From Thecamonas trahens ATCC 50062 (lineage: Eukaryota > Protista > Apusomonadida), in NCBI RefSeq assembly GCF_000142905.1, contig NW_013657619.1:1-63098 (forward strand): a stretch of DNA of 63,098 nucleotides, written 5' to 3'. Made by a program: the position numbers and the translations under genes. Below the pieces are notes generated by a model. That model was not told the origin of the DNA and ran no database searches. It saw only the letters and a list, made by a program, of their open reading frames with translations. Positions 1 to 49,031 of this stretch are shown here, in pieces; within the stretch, counting starts at the first letter, position 1; every line of letters begins with the position of its first letter.

Positions 1-2957
1 TTGTCTGGCTTCATGTTCTTGCTTTGGTTGCTTTTGCCTGTGATGGTTGACTACAATCGACATGCATTCCCATTCATCATTCCTTTCGTTCTTCTCGTTG
101 CTTTGTATTATTACTCGTCATGCTTCATTTGTTCTTGACTCCCCTGTTTTTATCGACCTTGACTTCCACATTCATTAGCCCTTGCTCACTACACTATCGA
201 TTCTCAACTTTGTTTTCGTCAGTCATGATCAATAGTTGTGCATGCAATGTATTTTGTGTTGACCCTGTTGTGTCGTGAACATGGTGATCTGCTGATCGAT
301 CAACCGCGCCCTGCCTCATCGACCTCAACGTCACCCGAGTTCATCCCATTGCCTGTTAGCTTTGTCCAGTTCCTGTTGGCTTACTCATACGTGTGCTGTG
401 CAAGCCATGTATGATCTTTGGTTGTTGTTGTGGACGTCATTGCCTCGTTTGATGCTGGTTCCGGCTTTTCTTCAATTAATTCAACGTTCAACTCAATTGA
501 CGTCCGCCGCCTTTCCTCTGCCGCCCAAGCCCCTCCACCCTCATCAACCACACCCCACACACACCCATCAGCCGTATCATACTCACCTTCATCAATGCTC
601 TAGCCCAATCTTCATACCCACCACCTCTTCGCCAGTCCCGCCACCCACGTCACGACCCCCCTCATCCACCCCTACCATGCTCATTACGCCCCATCACCAC
701 AAACCACCACCCTCACCGCCTACTCCACCACTTCCACTCTCATTTCAACCTCAACTACCACCCCCATGCCATGGCCATACCCACCACCATCTCGTCGCGC
801 ACTCCGCTTCCTCTTCCTCCTCATCCTCCTCGTCTCCCCGCTCCAACTCACCCTCATCCTCTACCCGGACCCCAACACTGCCACCGCCCAACCATCACAT
901 GCCTTACTGCCCATCCACCAACCAACGGCAATCTCAAGCCACCCAGCCTCGACCCCGCCCCCTCAGCTGCTCCGCCTCGCCGACCACCAGCCGCAAGCCG
1001 TCGCCCGCTCGCCCGAACAGCCGACCCTCTTCACCACCTAGCTCCCACCCACCACCAGCTACACAACCCACGACCACACCCAATGTTATCACTCACCGTG
1101 CACTATCACCAGTACAAATATCGCCGTCATCCATTCCCATCTTCCTCGGCTCATTTCCGCGTCGACTTGTTTGCCCTAGGCGGTTGAGCACGTCCTCGAC
1201 CGCCCGACCCCGCACATGCCCCCCACCAACCTCATTACCAGCTATACCCAATCTGATTTCACTACTACTCTACTACACGCTCACCCTCCCCCCTTGCACA
1301 ATCTCCAATCCACAGCTGCAGTATTTCAGAATCCGAGTTCTGCCACCTGAGGCCCAAGCTGTTGGCCCTGTGTCCCTTCGATGCTGCTGACTCCCCTGCC
1401 GCGGGCCCATCTCCGACCCCCACTCCCCAACCTGTCCACCCACAACCACCACACCAACACCCCACATACTCACTACCCCTGCAAACATAGCCACCCACTT
1501 CCCGTTCCCCGATACGTACATCAGCCGACGCCAACCCGTCAACAGCATCGCTGCCGGCCGCCTGCTGCCCACCGCCGACCGCCGCCCGCCGCCGACCGAC
1601 CACTGCCGGCACCACCAAGAGCAAGCTAGCCATCGACAGGGCATTGGAGACAATGCATAGAGATAGCCACATCATTGGCAATGACTACCAGTCCGCCCTC
1701 CAACCCATTTCTCCCCTCCCTTCTCCGGCCTTGCCCGTCACAGCCCCCGCCGGCCTGCTCATCGCCAGCCACCCCTGCTGCCGATCACCAAGCCAGACGA
1801 CGAAGCCACCGGGCTGGCCAAGACAAGGAAGAACAAGAGAGGGCAAGGCCAAGCGATAGGCAATGCAGTGGGTGGGCTAGAGTGCAGTGGTCTGCCTCCT
1901 CCTCCAATCCCAAGCCATCGTCTCCATCGACACCCATCTCAATCCAATCCGTCCGCCCTCCTCCCCCTGCCGCCCAACTGCCCGTCTTCTTCATCGCCCA
2001 CACTCCACACACAGCCGTAGCTTTACTATACCCACCCTTATCATAGCGGGAGTCGGCTGATAAGAGGACCTTGTCGTTCGAAACGTACTAGGAGAAGCCT
2101 TGCAGAGCTCGATAGGATGTGATAAGGTCGGGCGGGGTGAGACTGAGCTCGACAGGCAGAAGGCGCAGTGCGATGAAGAGCTCAGTTGCAAGGCCGCCAG
2201 CTCGTCCGAGGTAAACCAGCCGTCAAGGATCGAGGACTTGTCCTCTCCGACGGCACAGACCGAAGTGGATGAACTTGTCTCCGCCCACGTCACGTGTCTG
2301 GAAGCGGGAGATCTCCCACGTAATGCGGATGCCAGCGTCGTGTCGTCATGGTGGCGCCGCTTGAGCCGGGGCCATGCATGGTCCGCTGCTGTGCCAAGCC
2401 CAATCAAAGAGCGTCCAGCCCTCGGTCGGGACTTTTCTGTGTATGTTGTGGAACGCGGGAATGGTCATGTGGCGTGCAGGCACACACAACATGCCCCACC
2501 CGCCGATCCAGCCGCGTTTCCCCCATCGCTCACGCAAGCAAATACACCCCAACTTTCTCCACGGCCTCCTCGCACTCTTCTGCAATATCTGTCGCCTGCC
2601 GTGCTGGAGATGTCTCCGGATGTTGTTGCCACGGACAACTTGCGCCGGGAAATACGAAAGTGTGGCACTTTCTTCGCTGGATTGTGCCCTCAGCACAACC
2701 GAGGACAACAAGGTAGGGCCCAGCGATGTGAAATGGCCATTGAGGACGACGGCGGTTATAGCGATTGCAGTAGTCATCTCGAGATCAACAACAATATATT
2801 GTTGCTCATGTGTCCACCCAAGTAGTTACCACATGACCTGCAAACTCGCCAATTTTGCGATCGCTCCGCTTCACGCATCAGCCTCCCACAGCCGGTTTCA
2901 CCCAGGCGTCAGGGTCCTCGCCCTCGCCCTACCTGCCACCACCTGACTACCACCGCC

Positions 2958-23580: not shown

Positions 23581-25398
23581 TTACAGGCTCGCAATGAGCC
23601 GCCCCACCATCGGCTCGGCATCAAGCAGTGCGCGCGCGCCGGCCACGGACTCGGCCGCGCCAGCGGCGAGTAGGATGGCGGTCGGCACGACTCGCACTCG
23701 CTTCATGGCCTGCTTGATATGCGCAGACTCGGGAAGGTCGTCGACATTGGCAGGCACGCTGTCGGCGTAGATGGACCGCAGAAGGGCAGCCTCGGCCGCA
23801 GCCTCGTCGACCTGTCCGTATTTGGCGATGATGCCGCGCGAGCGGGCAAAGAGCTTCGAGTTGGAAACCGCAAGGTCGACCATCCGGTTGCCGACCACCT
23901 TGCCACGGAGAACGTGCGCACCAGTCGTGAGCGCGTTGAACGAGAGCTTATACCCGAGCTCGGTGTAGAGAAAGTCCCAACTGTCGCTGTCGGCGAGCAG
24001 CGGCGCAGACGCGGCGCCGGACCGAGTCGTCACCGTCACCACGCACGGCTCAAAGCCGGCGGCAACCGCAGCGGCATTGGCCACCCCCACGCTCTCGACC
24101 TTGTGCGCCGGGCAAACCGTGAGCGCAATCTTGGTCACGCCCGGAATGCTGCCGAGAGCTGCCAGTGTGGCTGCGGCGTCAGTGAGCTTCGTGGCATCGG
24201 TGTCGACCGGCAGGTTGGCCACCACTGTCGCCCCCGTGTCGGCAAGCGCCGGCGCGAGCTCGTCGAGCAGAAACGTTGTCGAAAGCTGCCAGTCAAAGCC
24301 ATCGTCTTTGGGAGCGAGCGAGAGGTCGCCGTTGCGGTTTCCCAGCGCGGCCCAGCCGCCGTCCACAAAGCCACGGACGTCGTTGATGCTCGCGCCGTAC
24401 GTGGGCGGGCACTCGGACGCGTCGATGATGCCCAGGTGGCCAACGCCAAAGTCAGAGCCGACGTAGTAGATGGGCGCACCGCTGCGGAGCGACGCGCCTC
24501 CGGCCTCGACCAGCCGCGCCAGCACCTCCATGTTCTCGCCCTGGTACACCGACCGCAGCGTCGCGGCGTAGCAGTCGAGCGCATGCAGCGCCTCGGCCGC
24601 CGGATCCGACGCGCCCATGAGTGCGCTCCGGACTAGAATCTCCAACAGCATCTTGGTCGCGCTCCCGCCCTTCATCCGCGTCGAGCCGGTCACCGACTCG
24701 GGCCCGACCACTGGGTTGATAATAAAGTTGCCAGCGCCCGATGGCAAGTCCATCGACGCCACCAGCGCGTCGGCCACGTCCTTGAACGACGACGTCCAAC
24801 CCTCGATGACGCTCGACCGCGCCAGCGCCACCGGGTTGAAGCCGACAAGACCGGCGATCCAGCGAATGGCCGGCTCGCTCGCCTGCTTGGCAAGGACATA
24901 GTCGAGCTGGCCGGCAACGTACGGCGCCGACAGGCCGCAGGTAATGCCGACATACACCACCAGGTCGGGCACAACATCCAGCCCCACAATCAATTGCTCC
25001 AGATCAGTGACCGCCTGATGCGGATCGTCCTCGCCGCGCTCCTGTGACTTGAGCAGAGCATAGTCGCCGCCTGCGATGAGATAAGCGACTCTGGCCCGAT
25101 CCGGCACCAGCGAGGCAAACGAGGTGGCGACGTGAAAGGCCAGCCGACCAGAGGTGCCACAACCAGAGAGAATGACCAATGGTGAGGCCGCGCCAGTGCA
25201 CGCCGCCCGCAGCTCTGTCGCCGTCGTCGCCACCTTCTCCCTCACAACCGCGCCAGCGAGACCTTCCTCTCCGTCAAAGCCGGTAAAGACCTGGTTGTCT
25301 GAGCACCTCAGCAGCCGCAGCATCCCACGCACATCACTCCGTGCTGCTGTCTCCAGCTCTTCCGTCAGCGCATTGCTCTGCTCTGTGTACCGCAGCAT
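23581..25398 (-). CDS. GCKR: Glucokinase regulatory protein-like / duplicated MurQ-like double-SIS-domain protein
   Basis: TEQSN.LT, SGCGTSGRLAF, LIAGGD.AL, GITCGLSAPYVAGQL, GFNPV, NPVVGPE.VTGSTRMKGGSATK, DASECPPTYG, KL..NALTTGAHVLRGKV..NRMVDL.VSNSKLF. Confidence 0.9.
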   Translation of the reverse strand: MLRYTEQSNALTEELETAARSDVRGMLRLLRCSDNQVFTGFDGEEGLAGAVVREKVATTATELRAACTGAASPLVILSGCGTSGRLAFHVATSFASLVPDRARVAYLIAGGDYALLKSQERGEDDPHQAVTDLEQLIVGLDVVPDLVVYVGITCGLSAPYVAGQLDYVLAKQASEPAIRWIAGLVGFNPVALARSSVIEGWTSSFKDVADALVASMDLPSGAGNFIINPVVGPESVTGSTRMKGGSATKMLLEILVRSALMGASDPAAEALHALDCYAATLRSVYQGENMEVLARLVEAGGASLRSGAPIYYVGSDFGVGHLGIIDASECPPTYGASINDVRGFVDGGWAALGNRNGDLSLAPKDDGFDWQLSTTFLLDELAPALADTGATVVANLPVDTDATKLTDAAATLAALGSIPGVTKIALTVCPAHKVESVGVANAAAVAAGFEPCVVTVTTRSGAASAPLLADSDSWDFLYTELGYKLSFNALTTGAHVLRGKVVGNRMVDLAVSNSKLFARSRGIIAKYGQVDEAAAEAALLRSIYADSVPANVDDLPESAHIKQAMKRVRVVPTAILLAAGAAESVAGARALLDAEPMVGRLIASL

Positions 25399-25666
25399 GG
25401 TCGCGAGAGTGGAGTGGCCCTCGGCACGCACGGCGGGCGCGGCGTGACAAGTGACCCGTCTCCACGTCACCACGCCCATGCGCCATCCATGCCACTTGCA
25501 GAGCATAGGCCCAAGTCGGCGGCGTGTGGCTGATCGTAGACAATGCCAAACCTGTATGTACGTATGTGGGCTGACTTGGTGTGTTACTACTGCCGCCATC
25601 TCGACTCATCTGCGCTAGCTTCCGGTGGGAGCGTGTGGAGCGAGGAGAGCTACACGGCGGAACTCC

Positions 25667-25755
25667 CTCCCGGGGGTAACGGGACCTCGGACAGCACACG
25701 TCCGCAGCATCAAGTGCAAGCGGGTAGCGTGGTGCGTCGTCAATGGCGTTGGGAA
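25667..25755 (-). promoter_or_regulatory. Candidate non-canonical SECIS element in the selenoprotein 3' UTR
   Basis: Minus strand: TGAC (25742-25739) and CGAG (25689-25686) form a GA/GA quartet. Helix GACGCAC(C)ACG / CGTGTGC(T)GTC, apical mini-helix CCGC..GCA/TGC..GCGG, basal AACG/CGTT and TTCCC/GGGAG. Lacks the apical AA and the 5' purine. Folded by eye only. Confidence 0.4.
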
Positions 25756-25873
25756 GCGAGAGCAGTGGACGATCAAAACGATGACGGCAGAGCGATGGCT
25801 GCGCGGACAACAGCAGCTGGATGCTCAGCCGAAGGCGGCCAGCGCAGCGCGAGAGGTAGCATGATGAGCATAT

Positions 25874-26169
25874 CTAGCCGTACATGCCCGAGGCGATCAT
25901 GGCATCGACAACCGACTGCGGCGAGGGGAACGAGCCCTTGTCGAGCTTTGAGAAGAACAGCGTTCCTTGTGGTAGTCGGTGATCTCAAACGCTCCGCGAC
26001 GCGGGCGAGCGAGTTCATTGCCTCGGACGACAACGTCCGGAAAGGCGGTGGTAATGGCCCGGGCGACCTGACGGTAGCGCCCGGAGTAACCTCACGAGGT
26101 ACAGTACTCAATGTGAATAGCCGGCGTGCCCTCAGGCACGGGCTCCGGTGCCGAAAACAGTCCTCCCAT
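25874..26169 (-). CDS. Rdx-family (SelW/SelT/SelH-like) selenoprotein with CxxU; in-frame TGA 26094-26092; frameshift near 25966
   Basis: MGGLFSAPEPVPEGTPAIHIEYCTS-TGA-GYSGRYRQVARAITTAFPDVVVRGNELARPRRGAFEIT, then in the -1 frame GTLFFSKLDKGSFPSPQSVVDAM..*. Matches the Rdx pattern IEYCxxUGY...FP...G.FE...FSK...G.FP. Confidence 0.85.
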
Positions 26170-26547
26170 ACCTTGTTGTCGCGTCGAGTCTGCTCCCCTT
26201 CCCCTCCCCCCCCCCCCCTCCCCCCTCCCCCCCCTCTTCCCCCCTCCTTCCCCCGGACTGCCGTCCTTCCCGTCTTTGTCAGCCAATCGCTGTCGGTTTG
26301 ACGGACCAGAGGGCGACCGAGGTAGAGGAGCTGATCACGCGCGCATACACACGTACACACACATACATGCACATACACATACATACACACACGCATGTAC
26401 GTACACATACACATACACACATACACACTTGCACACCCATCCATCCACCCATCCACCAATCAGCATCAGTCCATACCACCACTGCCACCAATGCCACCAC
26501 TGCCACCACCTCACTCTTGCACACACACACACACACACACACACACT

Positions 26548-27759: not shown

Positions 27760-28529
27760 CTCCAACCCACCACCTCCCCCCCCCCCCCTCCTCCTCCTCC
27801 TCGGGCACGTGACACCTTAGCGCGGTGNNNNNNNNNNNNNNNNNNNNNNNNNNNNNNNNNNNNNNNNNNNNNNNNNNNNNNNNNNNNNNNNNNNNNNNNN
27901 NNNNNNNNNNNNNNNNNNNNNNNNNNNNNNNNNNNNNNNNNNNNNNNNNNNNNNNNNNNNNNNNNNNNNNNNNNNNNNNNNNNNNNNNNNNNNNNNNNNN
28001 NNNNNNNNNNNNNNNNNNNNNNNNNNNNNNNNNNNNNNNNNNNNNNNNNNNNNNNNNNNNNNNNNNNNNNNNNNNNNNNNNNNNNNNNNNNNNNNNNNNN
28101 NNNNNNNNNNNNNNNNNNNNNNNNNNNNNNNNNNNNNNNNNNNNNNNNNNNNNNNNNNNNNNNNNNNNNNNNNNNNNNNNNNNNNNNNNNNNNNNNNNNN
28201 NNNNNNNNNNNNNNNNNNNNNNNNNNNNNNNNNNNNNNNNNNNNNNNNNNNNNNNNNNNNNNNNNNNNNNNNNNNNNNNNNNNNNNNNNNNNNNNNNNNN
28301 NNNNNNNNNNNNNNNNNNNNNNNNNNNNNNNNNNNNNNNNNNNNNNNNNNNNNNNNNNNNNNNNNNNNNNNNNNNNNNNNNNNNNNNNNNNNNNNNNNNN
28401 NNNNNNNNNNNNNNNNNNNNNNNNNNNNNNNNNNNNNNNNNNNNNNNNNNNNNNNNNNNNNNNNNNNNNNNNNNNNNNNNNNNNNNNNNNNNNNNNNNNN
28501 NNNNNNNNNNNNNNNNNNNNNNNNCACTA

Positions 28530-28568
<39 letters not shown>

Positions 28569-28693
28569 AACACACACACACACACACACACACACACGCG
28601 CGCATACCCGCACACCCCAGACACACGTCATACACATACCCTACTCACCCCCCCCCCCCCTCCCTCCTCCTCCTCGGGCACGTGACACCTTAG

Positions 28694-30713
28694 CGCGGTG
28701 CCCGACGAGGTGACCTCAGTGACGCAGTTTGATGCTGGGCTGGTGGTCGAGGCCATCTCGGTCGGATTGCACATGATGAACGAAGAACTGGCTTTCCCGA
28801 CTCAGTTGCCTCCGTCAATGTCGGCAAAGGTTCGCCTGTGCAACGCCATGGCAGAGGCCGTCAAGGAGCTCGGCTACCGCGGTGAGATTGGCTACGCCTC
28901 CATCATTTACACCCACGAGAAGGAGATCCGGGAACTGTTTGTCTGGCTCACCTCCCACATGCAGGAGGTTGGCGGCGTGGCGCCCGAGGCTGCACAGGCC
29001 GCGCCCGATCCGGGCTCGGACTCGCGGGCCCAGCTGATGAGGGCCGTCAAGTCGCGGGTCAACGCTCTTGTCAAGCGCGAGTCGTGGCGCTCGCCGCGGC
29101 TCCCGCGCCGGGCGTCGATGGTGCAGCGCGGCTCGGGAGCGACGTTTAAGGTTGCCACCGCGCGCCTCTACGCCCCGGGCCGGTACAAGGGCAAGAAGAA
29201 CGCCGCCGTCCTCCGCTACCTCCGCCGCTACCTGCCGCTGGTCACTCTCCAGCCGCCGGACACCATGGACGTGGCGCCGTCGATCATGGAGGACAATGTG
29301 ACGCAGGTCCTGCAAAAAGCTGACGTCGAGAACGAGTGGAACACCGCCGGCCTCGAGTCGGGCCTCACCCAGGCCCAGTACTGGGCGACCAAGAAGCAGG
29401 CGCTCATGTCCTCGTTTGCCTCGGACATCCACAAGGCGGTCCTCCTCAAGAAGCCCTCGCTCGAGTCCGAGTCCAAGGGCGCGCTCCGTGCCACCCACCA
29501 GTCGCTCTTTGTCCTCTCCTCCATGTTCAAGACTGGTAAGTCGAACCCGGCGCAGGCCGCCGTTGCCAAGGAGGCCGACGCCGAGCCGGTCGAGACCGAG
29601 GAGCAGGTCGCCGCCAAGCGCGCCGCCATCCTCTCGGACCTGCAGGCCGAGGAGGATGAGCTCTCGTACAACATCTCGGACGCAAACCGCCGTATTGCCG
29701 CTCTTGATGCCGAGCTGCACACGCTGCAGGAGCGGTTCAAGACTGAGGTGGCCAAGAAAAAGGAGCTCGAGGCTGCGTACATGTTTGAGAAGCGGGTCTT
29801 TGACGCCCTGGATGACCCCGAGCCAGCCATCGCCGAGCTCACCGCTAAGGTCGCCGCCATGCGCAAGGCGCTCGTCGAGCTGGCCGGGAAGTGGGAGCTC
29901 CGGCGCGCCCCGCTTGTGGCCAAGATCCGCGAGCTCAAGTCGGGCGAGGGTGACACCATGATCGAGATCAACGCGCTCATGGGCGCCATCCGCGACATCC
30001 GCGACGCCATGAAGGGCGTCATGGACGAGGGCCGCGAGCAGGAGGCCATCTACCAGGGCCTTCTCGCCGAGTACAAGGCCCTGCCCAAGGACATCACCCG
30101 CTCGCACTACACCAAGCGCATCCTCGACATTGTGGCACAAGTCCGCAAGCAAAAGGTCGACATCGACAAGGTTCTCATCGACACCCGCGCCCTCCAGCGC
30201 GACATCAACACCGTGACCGAGAAGCTCAAGCGCTCGTTTGCCATCACCGACGAGCTTATTTACGAGGACGCGCCTAACGACAAGGACGCCAAGGCCTCGT
30301 ACCGCGCCCTCGCCTCGCTTCACTCGCGCTTTGACGAGCTCATCGAGACAGTCCGCTCCATCGGCCATCTCGGCAACGAGATCCGCGACCTCGAGGCCAA
30401 GCACGCCAAGCTCGCCGACGCCAACGCCTCGCTCCAAGTCGATCGCCTCGAGGCCGACTATGAGGCCATTCGCTCCGAGAACAAGCAGCTAATTGCCCGC
30501 CTCAAGGCCATCGCCGAGGGCCTCGACGACCCAGGCGCCAACGCCGACGATGACGCCGATGCCGACGACGACGAGTACGACGACACCGACGCTGACTACG
30601 ACGAGGTGGAGTACGAGTACGAGGAGGTCGATGACGATGATCTCTTCGCCGCGGGCGACGATGCCGACGACGACGCTGACGATCCCGACGGGGACGACGA
30701 CAGCGACGAGTAG
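28694..30713 (+). CDS. CCDC22: Coiled-coil domain-containing protein 22 (CCC/Commander complex); 5' exon probably lies in the gap
   Basis: NN-CH region LP.SMSAK.R.C..MA.A.KELGY.GEIGY...Y, coiled coils, W...R.PL, R.HYT.RILDIV..VRKQK.DI.KVL.DTR.LQ.DIN....L.RSFA.TDELIY.DA, acidic tail. Acceptor TAG at 28691-28693. Confidence 0.92.
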
Positions 30714-43883: not shown

Positions 43884-44868
43884 GGCGAGTGTGACCGGAA
43901 GAGGAGGAGGGGGGGGAGGGGGGGGGGTGGGGGGGGAGGGGGTAGGGGGTAGGGGTAGTAGTACGGGTTACGGAACGNNNNNNNNNNNNNNNNNNNNNNN
44001 NNNNNNNNNNNNNNNNNNNNNNNNNNNNNNNNNNNNNNNNNNNNNNNNNNNNNNNNNNNNNNNNNNNNNNNNNNNNNNNNNNNNNNNNNNNNNNNNNNNN
44101 NNNNNNNNNNNNNNNNNNNNNNNNNNNNNNNNNNNNNNNNNNNNNNNNNNNNNNNNNNNNNNNNNNNNNNNNNNNNNNNNNNNNNNNNNNNNNNNNNNNN
44201 NNNNNNNNNNNNNNNNNNNNNNNNNNNNNNNNNNNNNNNNNNNNNNNNNNNNNNNNNNNNNNNNNNNNNNNNNNNNNNNNNNNNNNNNNNNNNNNNNNNN
44301 NNNNNNNNNNNNNNNNNNNNNNNNNNNNNNNNNNNNNNNNNNNNNNNNNNNNNNNNNNNNNNNNNNNNNNNNNNNNNNNNNNNNNNNNNNNNNNNNNNNN
44401 NNNNNNNNNNNNNNNNNNNNNNNNNNNNNNNNNNNNNNNNNNNNNNNNNNNNNNNNNNNNNNNNNNNNNNNNNNNNNNNNNNNNNNNNNNNNNNNNNNNN
44501 NNNNNNNNNNNNNNNNNNNNNNNNNNNNNNNNNNNNNNNNNNNNNNNNNNNNNNNNNNNNNNNNNNNNNNNNNNNNNNNNNNNNNNNNNNNNNNNNNNNN
44601 NNNNNNNNNNNNNNNNNNNNNNNNNNNNNNNNNNNNNNNNNNNNNNNNNNNNNNNNNNNNNNNNNNNNNNNNNNNNNNNNNNNNNNNNNNNNNNNNNNNN
44701 NNNNNNNNNNNNNNNNNNNNNNNNNNNNNNNNNNNNNNNNNNNNNNNNNNNNNNNNNNNNNNNNNNNNNNNNNNNNNNNNNNNNNNNNAAGGGGGGAAGG
44801 GTATTGGTTACGGTTACCAACGGGGACAGCTACGAGTATTGCTACTGCAGGAAGGTTGACGGTATGTG

Positions 44869-44899
<31 letters not shown>

Positions 44900-45297
44900 C
44901 CGCTCTCTTTCCTTCCCTGCGTCAACTGTGGCACCGTCTGGCCAACTGCCCAGCCAGCCGTCGGCGTGGGTTGGACAGACACCCTCGCATCAACCACAAC
45001 CAGCCACCATCAGTCAACCATCAGTCAGCCATCAGTCAGCCATCAACCACCATCAGCACACTCCACATCCCCGACAGCACACATTCCCCCCCCCTCCTTC
45101 CCCCCCCCTCTTCCCCCCCTCTTCCGCCTCTTCCTCCAATCCCTCTACACCCCCCCTCCCCCCTCTACCAATTTGTTTCCATTCCACCCCCCACCCCCCA
45201 CCACCTCCCCGGCCACCACCTCTTCCCTCTCCTACCCGCCCCCCTCCCCCACCCACTCCACGTCTTTCCACACCTCACGCTACACATAGACACAGAC

Positions 45298-46068
45298 ATG
45301 CGGGAGATAGCACGTGACGCTGTGGACGGACTCTACCGTGAGTACGTCTCGCGGTTCTTCTTTGGCCTCCGCATCCTCACATACGAGCGCAACTTGCTTG
45401 TCTCGGAGCTGGCTCGGGTGGCGCCGGCCGCTGCGGCGCATCGTGACCCGCTGGTCCTGGTCGTCCGCATGGACTACGACAAGAAGAAGGCTTCGAGTTG
45501 GGCACTTCGTCGCGTTTCCAAAATTGTTGCCTCCGCAAAGCCTCTTGTTCGCATCCGCACCTTGCTCTCCGAGAGTGAGCTCTCTTCGCCGGACAAGATC
45601 AATGCTGTTGTATTGGATGTCGCGGCTGCCTACGACCGCTGGTCGCTGCAGGTGGCCATGTATGATGGCGCGCCGCTCGATCGAGACTCGCGCTCGTTCT
45701 TCTTTGAACAGATCAACAACCTGTCGTCGCTGGAGGAGGTCTTCTCGGACCCCATGGGCATCGGCGCAAAGTTCCTCAAGGACTACTTTGCCGAGCTCGA
45801 GCTCGTCGACCTGCTCAGCAACGATCCGGGCGCAGATGATGAGCGCGCTACCCAGGACACTGTCCACCACGACCAGGAAGACGATCACGAGGAGGCCGAC
45901 GACGCTCTGGAGCCTGCACCCGAGGAGCTCGCCGCCGCCGCCCAGGCCAAGGCCAAGGCCAAGGCCGCCGCTGACGCCGTTGCTGACGCAACCTCGGCCG
46001 CTGCCGCGCCCGTTCCCATGGACCTTGCCTCTGCCAAGCCGCGGGCGCCGAGCCCGGATCCTGCCGCT
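45298..46068 (+). CDS. Hypothetical protein, 3' end lost in the gap
   Basis: Open frame with strong GC3 codon bias from ATG 45298 into the N-gap. No family recognised. Confidence 0.65.
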
Positions 46069-46946
46069 NNNNNNNNNNNNNNNNNNNNNNNNNNNNNNNN
46101 NNNNNNNNNNNNNNNNNNNNNNNNNNNNNNNNNNNNNNNNNNNNNNNNNNNNNNNNNNNNNNNNNNNNNNNNNNNNNNNNNNNNNNNNNNNNNNNNNNNN
46201 NNNNNNNNNNNNNNNNNNNNNNNNNNNNNNNNNNNNNNNNNNNNNNNNNNNNNNNNNNNNNNNNNNNNNNNNNNNNNNNNNNNNNNNNNNNNNNNNNNNN
46301 NNNNNNNNNNNNNNNNNNNNNNNNNNNNNNNNNNNNNNNNNNNNNNNNNNNNNNNNNNNNNNNNNNNNNNNNNNNNNNNNNNNNNNNNNNNNNNNNNNNN
46401 NNNNNNNNNNNNNNNNNNNNNNNNNNNNNNNNNNNNNNNNNNNNNNNNNNNNNNNNNNNNNNNNNNNNNNNNNNNNNNNNNNNNNNNNNNNNNNNNNNNN
46501 NNNNNNNNNNNNNNNNNNNNNNNNNNNNNNNNNNNNNNNNNNNNNNNNNNNNNNNNNNNNNNNNNNNNNNNNNNNNNNNNNNNNNNNNNNNNNNNNNNNN
46601 NNNNNNNNNNNNNNNNNNNNNNNNNNNNNNNNNNNNNNNNNNNNNNNNNNNNNNNNNNNNNNNNNNNNNNNNNNNNNNNNNNNNNNNNNNNNNNNNNNNN
46701 NNNNNNNNNNNNNNNNNNNNNNNNNNNNNNNNNNNNNNNNNNNNNNNNNNNNNNNNNNNNNNNNNNNNNNNNNNNNNNNNNNNNNNNNNNNNNNNNNNNN
46801 NNNNNNNNNNNNNNNNNNNNNNNNNNNNNNNNNNNNNNNNNNNNNNNNNNNNNNNNNNNNNNNNNNNNNNNNCGGTCGCCAGCGGCCCGGCCGCCTCATC
46901 CAAGCGCCGCAAGCGGGCGTAGCGACATGCATTGCTGTCGCTCCCT

Positions 46947-47753
46947 TTACTTCCGCCTCCCCCACCACTCGCGCCCGGCCCGCAGAAAGCTGACCAGATG
47001 CAGCGCGGCGCCGATGGCGGCCACGTCACGGAGCCCGGCCCGCGTCCGCGACACCTTCTTCCTCCCTTTCAGCACTTGCTCCTCCTTCAAACGCTCCACC
47101 ACCGGTGCCGCAGCCCGCGCCTCGCCCAGTGCCGCCTGCCATGCCACAACCCGCCCCAGCCCGACCTGATCGTCCAGCCACACACCCTCGTCCCACATAA
47201 CCAGCTGTGGCAGATCGACATGGTCGGCGCCGGGCTCGGCACTCGCTGGTACCAGCACTCCACGCCCGATCCGCTTCATCTTGCTCTCGGCCATCGCCAT
47301 CTTGGTTCCGGCCTTGGTCCTCCCGAGCAGGATGTTGGCGATCCGCACCGTTGCACCGCGGCTCCGTGCCACACCCACCGGCGGCAGCGTCAGCACCACC
47401 ACCTCGGGTGCATGTTGCGCCATCAGCCCCTCCAGCGCCCGCTCCACATCAAACGACTCCATCCTGCCCGGGAAGATCGACGTCGCCACCGGGACCACGC
47501 CCTCCTCCAGCCCGTCCCACGCATCGCCGCCGCCTGCGCCAGCCACCGCCACGCCGAGCGTCCCTCGCGTCACATACAGCGACATCAGTCTCTGCGGAGC
47601 ATTTTCTGTAGCGCCCACCTCTTCCGATGAGCCCTCGCCATTCTTCCCGCGAGCACCGCCCACGCCCGCCAGCACCGCCATGACCGAGCTCGCCCGCACC
47701 ACGCCAGCAACAGAGCCACACCTTTGTAGCAGCCACCGTGTAGCACCAAGCAT
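46947..47753 (-). CDS. YqgF/RNase H-like fold protein with putative mitochondrial transit peptide
   Basis: LMSLYV.RGTLGVAVA (beta1-2), LEGLMAQHAPEVVVLTLP, LVMWDEG and DVAAIGAALHLVSFL mirror YqgF motifs; Arg-rich MLGATRWLLQR N-terminus. Confidence 0.55.
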   Translation of the reverse strand: MLGATRWLLQRCGSVAGVVRASSVMAVLAGVGGARGKNGEGSSEEVGATENAPQRLMSLYVTRGTLGVAVAGAGGGDAWDGLEEGVVPVATSIFPGRMESFDVERALEGLMAQHAPEVVVLTLPPVGVARSRGATVRIANILLGRTKAGTKMAMAESKMKRIGRGVLVPASAEPGADHVDLPQLVMWDEGVWLDDQVGLGRVVAWQAALGEARAAAPVVERLKEEQVLKGRKKVSRTRAGLRDVAAIGAALHLVSFLRAGREWWGRRK

Positions 47754-47819
47754 TCTCCACAACGACTGTGAACCTTGTCCGCTCTGCGCTTTCCCCTCGC
47801 CACCCGCGACGTGCTCGAG

Positions 47820-49031
47820 TTAGGTGCCTCTGCTGCTCGCCCTCCTCGCCCCGCCCCTGCCGCCAGCCCACCCACTCGCTCACCCATCGCGTTCAATGCC
47901 ACCATCGCTCTCTCCGGCATCTGCACGGATCCATTCACATGCATTGTCAGACTCTTGCTGGCCTTATCACTGATCAGCTCAACTTCTGTGGTCTCGATGA
48001 GGCGTGCCGTGGAGCTCGAGCGATCGCGCGGCTTCGCGCCGGTGGTGAAGGAGGACAAGCTCGGCGAGGTCAGATTCATCGGCAGACGGCGCAGCGAGGG
48101 TCTCCTTACGAGGAGGCACGCCGTAGCGCGATCGTAGAAACGGCTGCGGAGGCGCCGGTGGATCGGACGAAGCGCTGCGAAGCGCAACATGCGCCAGGTG
48201 GACAACGATGGCTGCCGACGGCGGCGCGTGCTCGGTCGCCACCGTATTGATGGCCGCAACCGAGGCTCGTCTCGACTTCCGCGCCGGCCTCGCCCGCAGC
48301 GGCCGCGGCTCGAGCGACGACGACGACGTGCAAGATGCAGTCGATACCGACGAGGACCACGAGCCGAGCGGGCTGGTCGAGCCCACAGACCCAATCGACG
48401 CCCTCCGACCTGGCCGGCCCCGAAGCGCCGCGTACATCCGCCCCGCTGACTCGGCCGTCCTCAGCGCAGTCGGCGAGTCGGCAACAAGCGACGCAACCGA
48501 CGACGACGGTACCGAGACAAGCCCAGCCCCAGGCGCAACATCTTCCACATCCACCAGCCCCGGCGCCTCGTCCTTCAACGCCCGCGCCTCATCGCATCGC
48601 CTCCGCAGCGACACCAGCTTCCGACGTTCCACCACCTCGCTCGTCGACTTGCTCGTGCTCATCGCCAAGCCGCTCTTGGACTTGGACCGACCCTTTTCGC
48701 CGGTCACTCTGGGACGCACCTCCGGCATCGATCCATGCGTCGCGCTCGACCAGCTCCTGCGCTCTGCGCTCCTTCTTCGCCGAGAAGAGCCTCCCTTCCG
48801 CCTCTTCTCACCGCCCTCCTCGTCCCCAGTCTCCAGAAGCACGCCCAGTCGAGCGGCAAGCTTGGCTCGCCGGCTCCGAGAAAGTGGTCGCGAGCGAGTG
48901 CCGAGACTGCCGCCGCTTCCGCTGCTCGCTCCACCACCGGAGGCGCGCCCGGCGCTCAGCCCATGACGACCACGCTCTCGGCGCGGCGGCGAGAGTGAGC
49001 CATCCACTCCCAGCCATACCGGCATAGCCAT
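47820..49031 (-). CDS. Hypothetical Ser/Arg-rich protein (possible frameshift near 48139; 3' end uncertain)
   Basis: 350-aa ORF 49031-47979, apparently continued in the -1 frame (FYDRATACLL...). No family recognised. Confidence 0.45.

Follow-up and report, generated by a model that had tools for sequence, protein, structure and literature searches.

The stretch of DNA analysed here (the window) comprises positions 1 to 63,098 of contig NW_013657619.1 from Thecamonas trahens ATCC 50062. On its minus strand, a reading frame opens with the ATG at 26169-26167 and runs for 25 codons (MGGLFSAPEPVPEGTPAIHIEYCTS, ending in IHIEYCTS) up to a TGA at 26094-26092, behind which the same frame continues as GYSGRYRQVARAITTAFPDVVVRGNELARPRRGAFEITDYHK. 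In the assembled sequence this continuation drifts into unrelated residues (ERCSSQ) and halts at a TGA; LFFSKLDKGSFPSPQSVVDAMIASGMYG is encoded in the -1 register, which is closed by the TAG at 25876-25874. A preliminary description of this stretch had proposed that a selenoprotein of the Rdx/SelW type with an N-myristoylated start is hidden at this place. The coordinates, the CxxU-type motif (C-T-S-TGA), the slip of one nucleotide and the MGGLFS start are all seen in the sequence as they were given there. The gene is a new member of the well-known SelW-like/Rdx family. It is very likely that it is a real SelW-like selenoprotein gene, in which selenocysteine (Sec) would be inserted at the in-frame UGA, and that the frame slip is not natural.

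Family membership and conservation of the frame

Searched against all six frames of the genome (28.7 Mb in 131 contigs), the Pfam profile Rdx (PF10262) matched 25978-26118 of the minus strand with 33.5 bits (cut-off 22.6, E 1.2e-6) and one TGA inside the match, a spanning hit of the kind that the preliminary description had named as a check. The match covers positions 2-47 of the 74 in the profile; the frame slip of the assembly cuts it off at 47. The piece behind the TGA on its own matched Rdx (E 0.0055) as well as the NCBIfam model TIGR02174 CXXU_selWTH ('SelT/SelW/SelH'; E 3.2e-7), both alignments beginning at profile position 10-11, just behind CxxU. Profile, homology and fold searches were performed with separate pieces rather than with a joined read-through protein, and a PDB sequence search with the two short pieces of the gene alone gave no match. 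The corresponding piece of an ortholog (P0001, see below) reached 44.2 bits against TIGR02174 (cut-off 34.2, positions 14-72). The family is characterized by a thioredoxin-like beta-alpha-beta-beta-beta-alpha fold; the low-confidence ESM-Atlas model of P0001 (predicted local distance difference test, pLDDT, 0.56) aligned to an Rdx cluster at a template modelling (TM) score of 0.68, and the closest ESM-Atlas cluster was 'Selenoprotein W (fragment)' (0.89). The sole PDB sequence match of the ortholog was 2LJK, MIEN1/C17orf37 (E 0.0067). The subfamilies SelW and SelW2/Rdx12 are not separable here, as the ortholog and a paralogue of the gene both match 2LJK weakly.

Like SelW and the SelW-like proteins of protists, algae and bacteria, the predicted product is a small single-domain protein of ~10 kDa, with CxxU near the N-terminus directly after a beta-strand (I-E-Y-C-x-x-U-G-Y) and with the motifs GAFE...SK...G.FP behind it, and a putative selenocysteine insertion sequence (SECIS) lies in the 3' untranslated region (3'UTR). 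It differs from SelW in a conserved N-terminal extension of 15 residues with an MGxxxS start, which SelW lacks, and in the core of the SECIS candidate, which is UUGA and has no apical AA.

To find relatives of the gene, phmmer was run with the 43-residue piece behind the TGA against 1.84 billion representatives. The best match, P0001 (73 aa, 74% identity, E 2.6e-9), is a truncated call of an open reading frame (ORF) on the ENA metagenome contig L010. At the DNA level, L010 reads ATG-MGGLFSAPEPVPEGTNAIHVEYCTS-TGA-GYSGYFR, an intron, DVARAI…GAFEITDYHKNTLFFSKLDKGSFP… and a stop; both MGGLFSAPEPVPEGT and CTS-TGA-GYSG are shared with the T. trahens gene, and the intron has no counterpart there. In a tblastn comparison, P0001 scored 60+45 bits with the present locus as against 40 bits with the paralogue, and is accordingly placed with the former. 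The first 15 codons of the two orthologs are identical in seven cases and synonymous in the other eight, with no non-synonymous difference. For all 25 codons before the TGA the counts are 13 identical, 10 synonymous and 2 non-synonymous, and for 63 codons after it 23, 24 and 16, respectively. These counts indicate purifying selection on both sides of the TGA. A glycosyltransferase neighbour on L010 is just 46% identical to its T. trahens homologue, which is located on another contig; the distance between the two organisms is thus large, and the unchanged N-terminus reflects constraint rather than recency.

The TGA is kept in the ortholog, in the paralogue and in a further SelW-like gene on a JGI metagenome contig of an unknown eukaryote (L011, 1-600). 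That gene reads ...IYIEYCNS-TGA-G with the GT donor of an intron right behind TGA-G, has a second intron within ...FWSKLG|...|GAGFP and a textbook SECIS (AUGAA...GAAA...UGAG) downstream; its gene call P0002 is a chimera of 109 residues. A protein homology search with P0001 returned only P0001 itself, and back-translated pattern scans of JGI metagenome contigs with the N-terminus and with FFSKLDKGSFP found nothing. A further protein from the phmmer result, the repeat protein P0003, was judged spurious.

The frame slip was analyzed with four independent runs from four studies, namely the DNA metagenomes X1 and X4 and the metatranscriptomes X6 and X9, whose contigs were compared over 25300-26195 and are at least 99% alike. 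The runs containing the sequence stem from marine, estuarine and subsurface samples and, in addition, include 2010-2011 runs of one organism. Each of the four carries, in its sole contig there, an extra C behind position 25964 of the plus strand (GGG on the coding strand). The missing G had been expected beforehand from the paralogue, which reads …DDAGTVYWSKL… and predicts …DYHK-G-T-LFFSKL… for the present gene. With the extra base, ...DYHK-G-TLFFSKLDKGSFP... and the frame of 98 codons are restored, and the restored stretch agrees with DYHKNTLFFSKLDKGSFP of the ortholog and ...GTVYWSKL... of the paralogue. In the start codon, the TGA and the redox motif, no base difference was present in any of the four runs.

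Natural populations thus carry the intact frame. Since four of four runs have the extra base, the slip noted in the preliminary description is not a feature of the gene; it arose as a homopolymer error of the assembly or, at most, is a lesion that the sequenced strain carries. A lesion would mean that the species possesses the selenoprotein gene but that the reference strain holds a pseudogene, a real deletion of one nucleotide having cost it the C-terminal third of the protein. The deletion is indeed present in the assembly and the runs compared are environmental samples, not those of the strain itself, which weighs against an intact gene in the strain. We nevertheless regard a lesion as unlikely, given that the deletion site is a G homopolymer, that the 2010-2011 runs of the organism are small read sets and presumably of a homopolymer-error-prone chemistry, that all four natural samples, at an identity of at least 99%, have the intact frame and that the assembled copy shows no other damage. 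The coordinates of the gene are given with the corrected frame (Table 1).

Transcription and selenocysteine use

RNA contigs from two of the studies cover the gene. The 625 nt contig of X6 is colinear with the genome on 25571-26191, and contigs of X9 are colinear on 25607-25757 and 25765-26174; neither contains a joint. Whereas the DNA contigs extend beyond both ends of the RNA contigs, the RNA contigs stop at the borders of the gene. They cover 22 nt of the 5'UTR, in which there is no other ATG, so that the AUG at 26169 is the first one, and ~300 nt of the 3'UTR. These are assembled metatranscriptome contigs with a possible content of DNA, a point that tells against their use as proof of a transcript. 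Downstream of the gene, the long ORF of a GKRP-like gene starts at an ATG at 25599, within the 3' end of the RNA contig (25571-25599 of the window); the real start of the GKRP-like gene is therefore probably located further downstream (compare 23581-25398 in the preliminary description).

The colinearity of the RNA contigs over the TGA means that splicing does not remove the UGA. The preliminary description had pointed to GTGAGG at this site as a possible splice donor by which the UGA would be removed from the mRNA. The letters GT-GAGG do look like a donor, and the SelW-like gene of L011 has an intron directly after TGA-G, though the TGA of that gene is not lost with the intron. The present site, however, is crossed without joints by two metatranscriptome contigs that stem from different studies, removal would delete the Rdx core, and the ortholog reads AGC-TGA-GGG (CTGAGG at the site in question), without a GT donor. 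Splicing of the UGA is accordingly extremely improbable.

The genome was further searched for tRNA-Sec, SepSecS, SelD/SPS, eEFSec and PSTK. A tRNA-Sec (74.4 bits; called tRNA-SeC(tca) by ARAGORN), SepSecS (285+131 bits), SelD/SPS (192.8 bits) and domain III of eEFSec (127.7 bits) were obtained, in line with the check on Sec machinery proposed in the preliminary description. Less favourable are three points: the PSTK model gave weak matches only, the model for domain 4 of eEFSec, which matched nowhere, had no match in the genome, and SBP2 was outside the scope of the search. The organism uses selenocysteine.

Besides the present gene, at least nine other loci of the same genome are TGA-containing selenoprotein loci (a SelW-like paralogue, SelT, four GPx and three deiodinase-like genes); with the three Rdx genes included, the 28.7-Mb genome holds at least 10 Sec-gene candidates. 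One in-frame TGA is found in each of the four GPx matches (L013, L014, L017/L018 and C41:31645-31782) and in each of the three deiodinase-like matches (L020, L021 and L022), and most of these matches are followed by an AUGAC...CGA(G/C) hairpin. The Selenoprotein_S model had a single match at 16.8 bits only. No selenoprotein study of T. trahens was found in a literature search.

The search with the Rdx profile gave two loci in addition to the present gene, on contigs C1 and C38. The paralogue on C1 (L002) starts with MSSKSITIEY-C, has an intron of ~250 nt that splits the Cys codon and continues with T-N-TGA-GYFSRY…GAFEVTDDAGTVYWSKLSGQGFP…. It resembles the present gene in the motif C-T-N-TGA-G-Y, in the C-terminal motifs and in the SECIS frame UGAC...CGA, and is ~41% identical to the ortholog of the present gene over the C-terminal 51 residues. 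It differs by the lack of the N-terminal extension, by the intron within the Cys codon and by a canonical SECIS (AUGA, AAA). The gene on C38 (L003 ~1000-1830, plus strand) is a SelT gene with ...VAFCQS-TGA-GYANHF..., a hydrophobic middle segment and the motif GAFELYVDGKLVFSKL.

Table 1. Features of the SelW-like gene (positions refer to the window)
Feature	Position	Strand	Remarks
Coding sequence	25874..26169	-	98 codons with the base missing from the assembly counted; 97 codons and 2 bases as assembled
N-terminal extension MGGLFSAPEPVPEGT, conserved	26125..26169	-	Without counterpart in the paralogue; fits the N-myristoylation consensus
Redox motif Cys23-Thr-Ser-Sec26 (predicted)	26092..26103	-	Sec codon would be TGA 26094-26092; Rdx profile match spans the TGA
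Deficit of 1 nt in the assembly	25964..25966	-	Coding strand GG, as against GGG in four independent data sets
Stop codon TAG, corrected frame	25874..25876	-	Read from the sequence
SECIS-like stem-loop, 3'UTR	25663..25760	-	5' core UUGAC 25743-25739; 3' core CGAG 25689-25686
Transcript extent (short 5'UTR, coding sequence, 3'UTR with the SECIS candidate)	25571..26191	-	Metatranscriptome contig X6

Constrained folding was used to look for SECIS candidates, defined by the core N-UGA-N … N-GA-N and a helix immediately next to it. The hairpin of the present gene begins 131 nt past the stop codon and consists of UUGAC, a helix 2 of 10 bp, CUAC, a mini-stem as in the type-II form and CGAG; the minimum-free-energy fold also closes helix 1, outside the core. 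It resembles a canonical type-II SECIS in helix 1, in the internal loop and in the UGA/GA tandem of sheared pairs from which helix 2 (~10 bp) rises. Further points of agreement are the spacing of the 5' internal loop, the apical mini-stem and the location in the 3'UTR, ~350 nt past the UGA. In both strands of the 63-kb window, the descriptor UGAC…CGA with an adjacent helix of at least 10 bp has this one match only. Single-nucleotide polymorphisms of the environmental contigs are located at 25712, in the apical loop, and at 25677, which is outside helix 2, and no difference is listed for the UUGAC in the four environmental data sets. Two other motifs were discarded as SECIS candidates: an ATGAG at ~25609 lies at or past the 3' ends of the RNA contigs and has no helix, and a TTGAT at 25712 varies among the environmental contigs.

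The architecture of the hairpin agrees with that of seven other SECIS candidates of the genome and with that of the ortholog. SelT, the C1 paralogue, one GPx and three deiodinase-like genes have AUGAC … CGA(G/C) in their 3'UTRs, in each case with a type-II apex and a helix 2 of ~10 bp. In the ortholog, the matching place (L010 ~2306-2391) holds a canonical AUGAC…ACAAA…CGAG. The apical AA is also wanting in SelT (AUGAC...CGAC, bulge CCAC) and in one deiodinase-like gene (UCAUC). For the GPx gene on contig C12, the best candidate (L018 1869-1925, plus strand, 3'UTR) appears to combine the cores CUGAC and CGAG with a helix of 11 bp and a properly spaced AA; no matching helix goes with an ATGAC that lies 18 nt upstream of the CUGAC. 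This candidate suggests that the base before the UGA is free in this lineage. The element of another GPx is ambiguous.

Several observations speak against a functional SECIS at this place. In human SECIS elements, the consensus consists of AUGA, GA and an apical AAA/G or CCX motif, and the A of AUGA and the apical motif were called highly conserved (PMC2761289). The present hairpin contains UGA and GA, but the base in front of the UGA is U instead of A, and the 5' internal loop at the right distance, where AA is expected, is CUAC instead of AAA/G or CCX. The descriptor used for the window was tuned on elements of this organism after the present one had been seen. The folding energy of the region is no better than that of shuffled sequences (z -0.10), a score that says little in DNA of 63% G+C. 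A search of the three Rdx loci with Rfam (cmscan, E<=10) gave no match to a SECIS family; as the canonical elements of the paralogue and SelT were missed too, Rfam is uninformative here. The cores of four SECIS elements were not aligned by MAFFT.

The deviating core (UUGA, without the AA) and the missing Rfam match would both fit a UGA at 26094-26092 that acts as a plain stop, in which case a peptide of 25 residues or nothing would be made and the Rdx similarity downstream would be a relic. Such a relic is hard to reconcile with a downstream frame that has stayed open and that, compared with a distant ortholog, shows purifying selection (24 synonymous and 16 non-synonymous differences in 63 codons), with a TGA that coincides precisely with the Sec position in the Rdx profile, with a genome that plainly uses Sec and with a SECIS-like element in the right place. 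We therefore regard a plain stop as very unlikely, and the hairpin is probably the functional SECIS of the gene. Of the preliminary description, the real selenoprotein gene of the Rdx/SelW type is upheld by the Rdx match over the TGA, the Sec machinery, the SECIS-like element, the colinear RNA and the ortholog that keeps the TGA.

In the mechanism that we propose, an intron-less gene on the minus strand would be transcribed from about 26191 to 25571 and would encode a selenoprotein of 98 residues that belongs to the Rdx family and resembles SelW. Translation would start at the AUG at 26169, and codon 26 (the UGA at 26094-26092) would be read as selenocysteine, giving the redox motif Cys23-x-x-Sec26. 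Decoding of this codon would be directed by the type-II SECIS-like hairpin of the 3'UTR, ~350 nt 3' of the UGA; in its UGAC...CGA[G/C] frame, this hairpin conforms to the SECIS consensus of the organism itself.

The N-terminal extension and comparison with MIEN1

N-myristoylation follows the consensus G-{EDRKHPFYW}-x-x-[STAGCN]-{P} (PROSITE PS00008), and the start of the predicted protein, M-G-G-L-F-S-A, fits the consensus of the N-myristoyltransferase (NMT) with Gly2, a small uncharged residue 3, Ser6 and a residue 7 other than Pro. A gene for NMT is present in the genome (PF01233, 247.7 bits, open frame of 435 residues). The conservation between T. trahens and the ortholog starts sharply at the ATG, and the extension is absent from the paralogue. 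No paper linking SelW to myristoylation was found in a literature search.

Other points weigh against a firm assignment. The extension is acidic and rich in Pro (APEPVPEGT) and contains neither a Cys nor a basic patch as second membrane signal. All 15 residues are conserved, well beyond the 6-7 that are read by NMT. The consensus is short, and ~1-2% of random N-termini would fit it. In the ortholog, moreover, an in-frame ATG is located 13 codons upstream of MGGLFS (L010 ~1735-1776). It would add MLAVLALACNLIG, which is hydrophobic, resembles a signal peptide and has no counterpart in T. trahens; if this ATG is part of the transcript and used, the myristoylation motif of the ortholog would be abolished.

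The extension could accordingly be a peptide for protein interaction or targeting, or the start could lie elsewhere, and the protein would then be soluble like SelW. The composition of the extension, the length of the conserved stretch and the upstream ATG of the ortholog agree with this, and the N-terminal extension in front of the CxxC of MIEN1 is likewise rich in Pro and Glu and not known to be lipidated. A soluble protein is thus a serious possibility that we hold to be somewhat short of probable, given that Gly2, Ser6 and the non-Pro residue 7 exactly fit the NMT consensus, that conservation in two species begins sharply at the ATG, that the RNA contig of T. trahens starts 22 nt upstream with no other ATG and that NMT is present. 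On balance, we lean slightly towards an extension that is N-myristoylated on Gly2. The myristoylated start proposed in the preliminary description is hence a reasonable inference from the fit of MGGLFS, the presence of NMT and the strict conservation of the N-terminus, but the term membrane-anchored went too far, as there is no second membrane signal. With a myristate, the predicted selenol/thiol oxidoreductase would be a weak or reversible membrane binder, like the prenylated MIEN1 with another lipid.

MIEN1, which we take to be identical with Rdx12, has a thioredoxin-like fold of the Rdx type, as would be expected of the predicted protein, shares with it an N-terminal extension before the redox motif, a redox-active CxxC in MIEN1, and it sets a precedent for a lipidated, membrane-associated Rdx protein. 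Its lipid is a geranylgeranyl group on the CVIL at the C-terminus, and its site of action is the inner side of the plasma membrane (PMC3527542, PMC4536591). The two proteins differ in that MIEN1 has Cys where Sec would be placed here, and in that MIEN1 carries the lipid at the C-terminus, whereas the present protein ends with …SGMYG without a CAAX box and its lipid would be N-terminal. In a study that uses the name Rdx12 and does not name MIEN1, Rdx12 was described to have arisen from SelW2 in vertebrates as a duplicate of the tetrapod era (PMC3316567). If MIEN1 is Rdx12, this vertebrate origin makes the resemblance one of analogy, not of orthology.

A wider reading combines the two unusual features of the gene. 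According to it, an apusomonad-specific branch of the SelW-like proteins would be N-myristoylated and thus provide the first lipid-anchored selenoprotein of the SelW type, an N-terminal counterpart of the prenylated MIEN1. In T. trahens, Sec would be inserted by a SECIS that functions although it has UUGA in place of AUGA and lacks the apical AA. We put this forward tentatively, as a combination that is plausible and yet rather less than probable.

Surroundings and implications

Upstream of the gene, 26200-26470 of the window form a divergent intergenic region towards an enoyl-CoA hydratase gene (ATG at ~26548, plus strand), for which an exact look-up gave no entry on record. This region contains a tract of ~60 nt that is rich in G and A, with long runs of G, and then an imperfect (GT/GTAT)n microsatellite; the tracts yield spurious long ORFs and spurious matches to miRNA models in the Rfam scan. 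The G+C content of the window, ~0.63 elsewhere, falls to 0.37-0.40 in 44001-48000, and also dips in 28001-30000. In the former part, an ORF of 767 residues (44866-47169, plus strand) has a weak match to an Alfin domain only. In the latter (28-30 kb), G+C drops to 0.475 in a part that overlaps with a CCDC22 homologue, the ORF at 28698-30710.

The gene enlarges the selenoproteome of T. trahens, a marine flagellate that belongs to the apusomonads, near the root of animals and fungi, and it could escape annotation twice, by the UGA and by the homopolymer error in the assembly. The series of SECIS candidates within one genome (AUGA, CUGA and UUGA, with and without AA), together with the canonical and the deviant element of the ortholog pair, provides a natural test of what the core requires. 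If the wider reading is true, both of the 'invariant' features of the SECIS would be dispensable in this lineage. With the conserved MGGLFS N-terminus, the possible lipidation of a redox protein of the SelW type can be put to the test. Little is known of what SelW does, and its substrates would be easier to trace if it had a membrane address.

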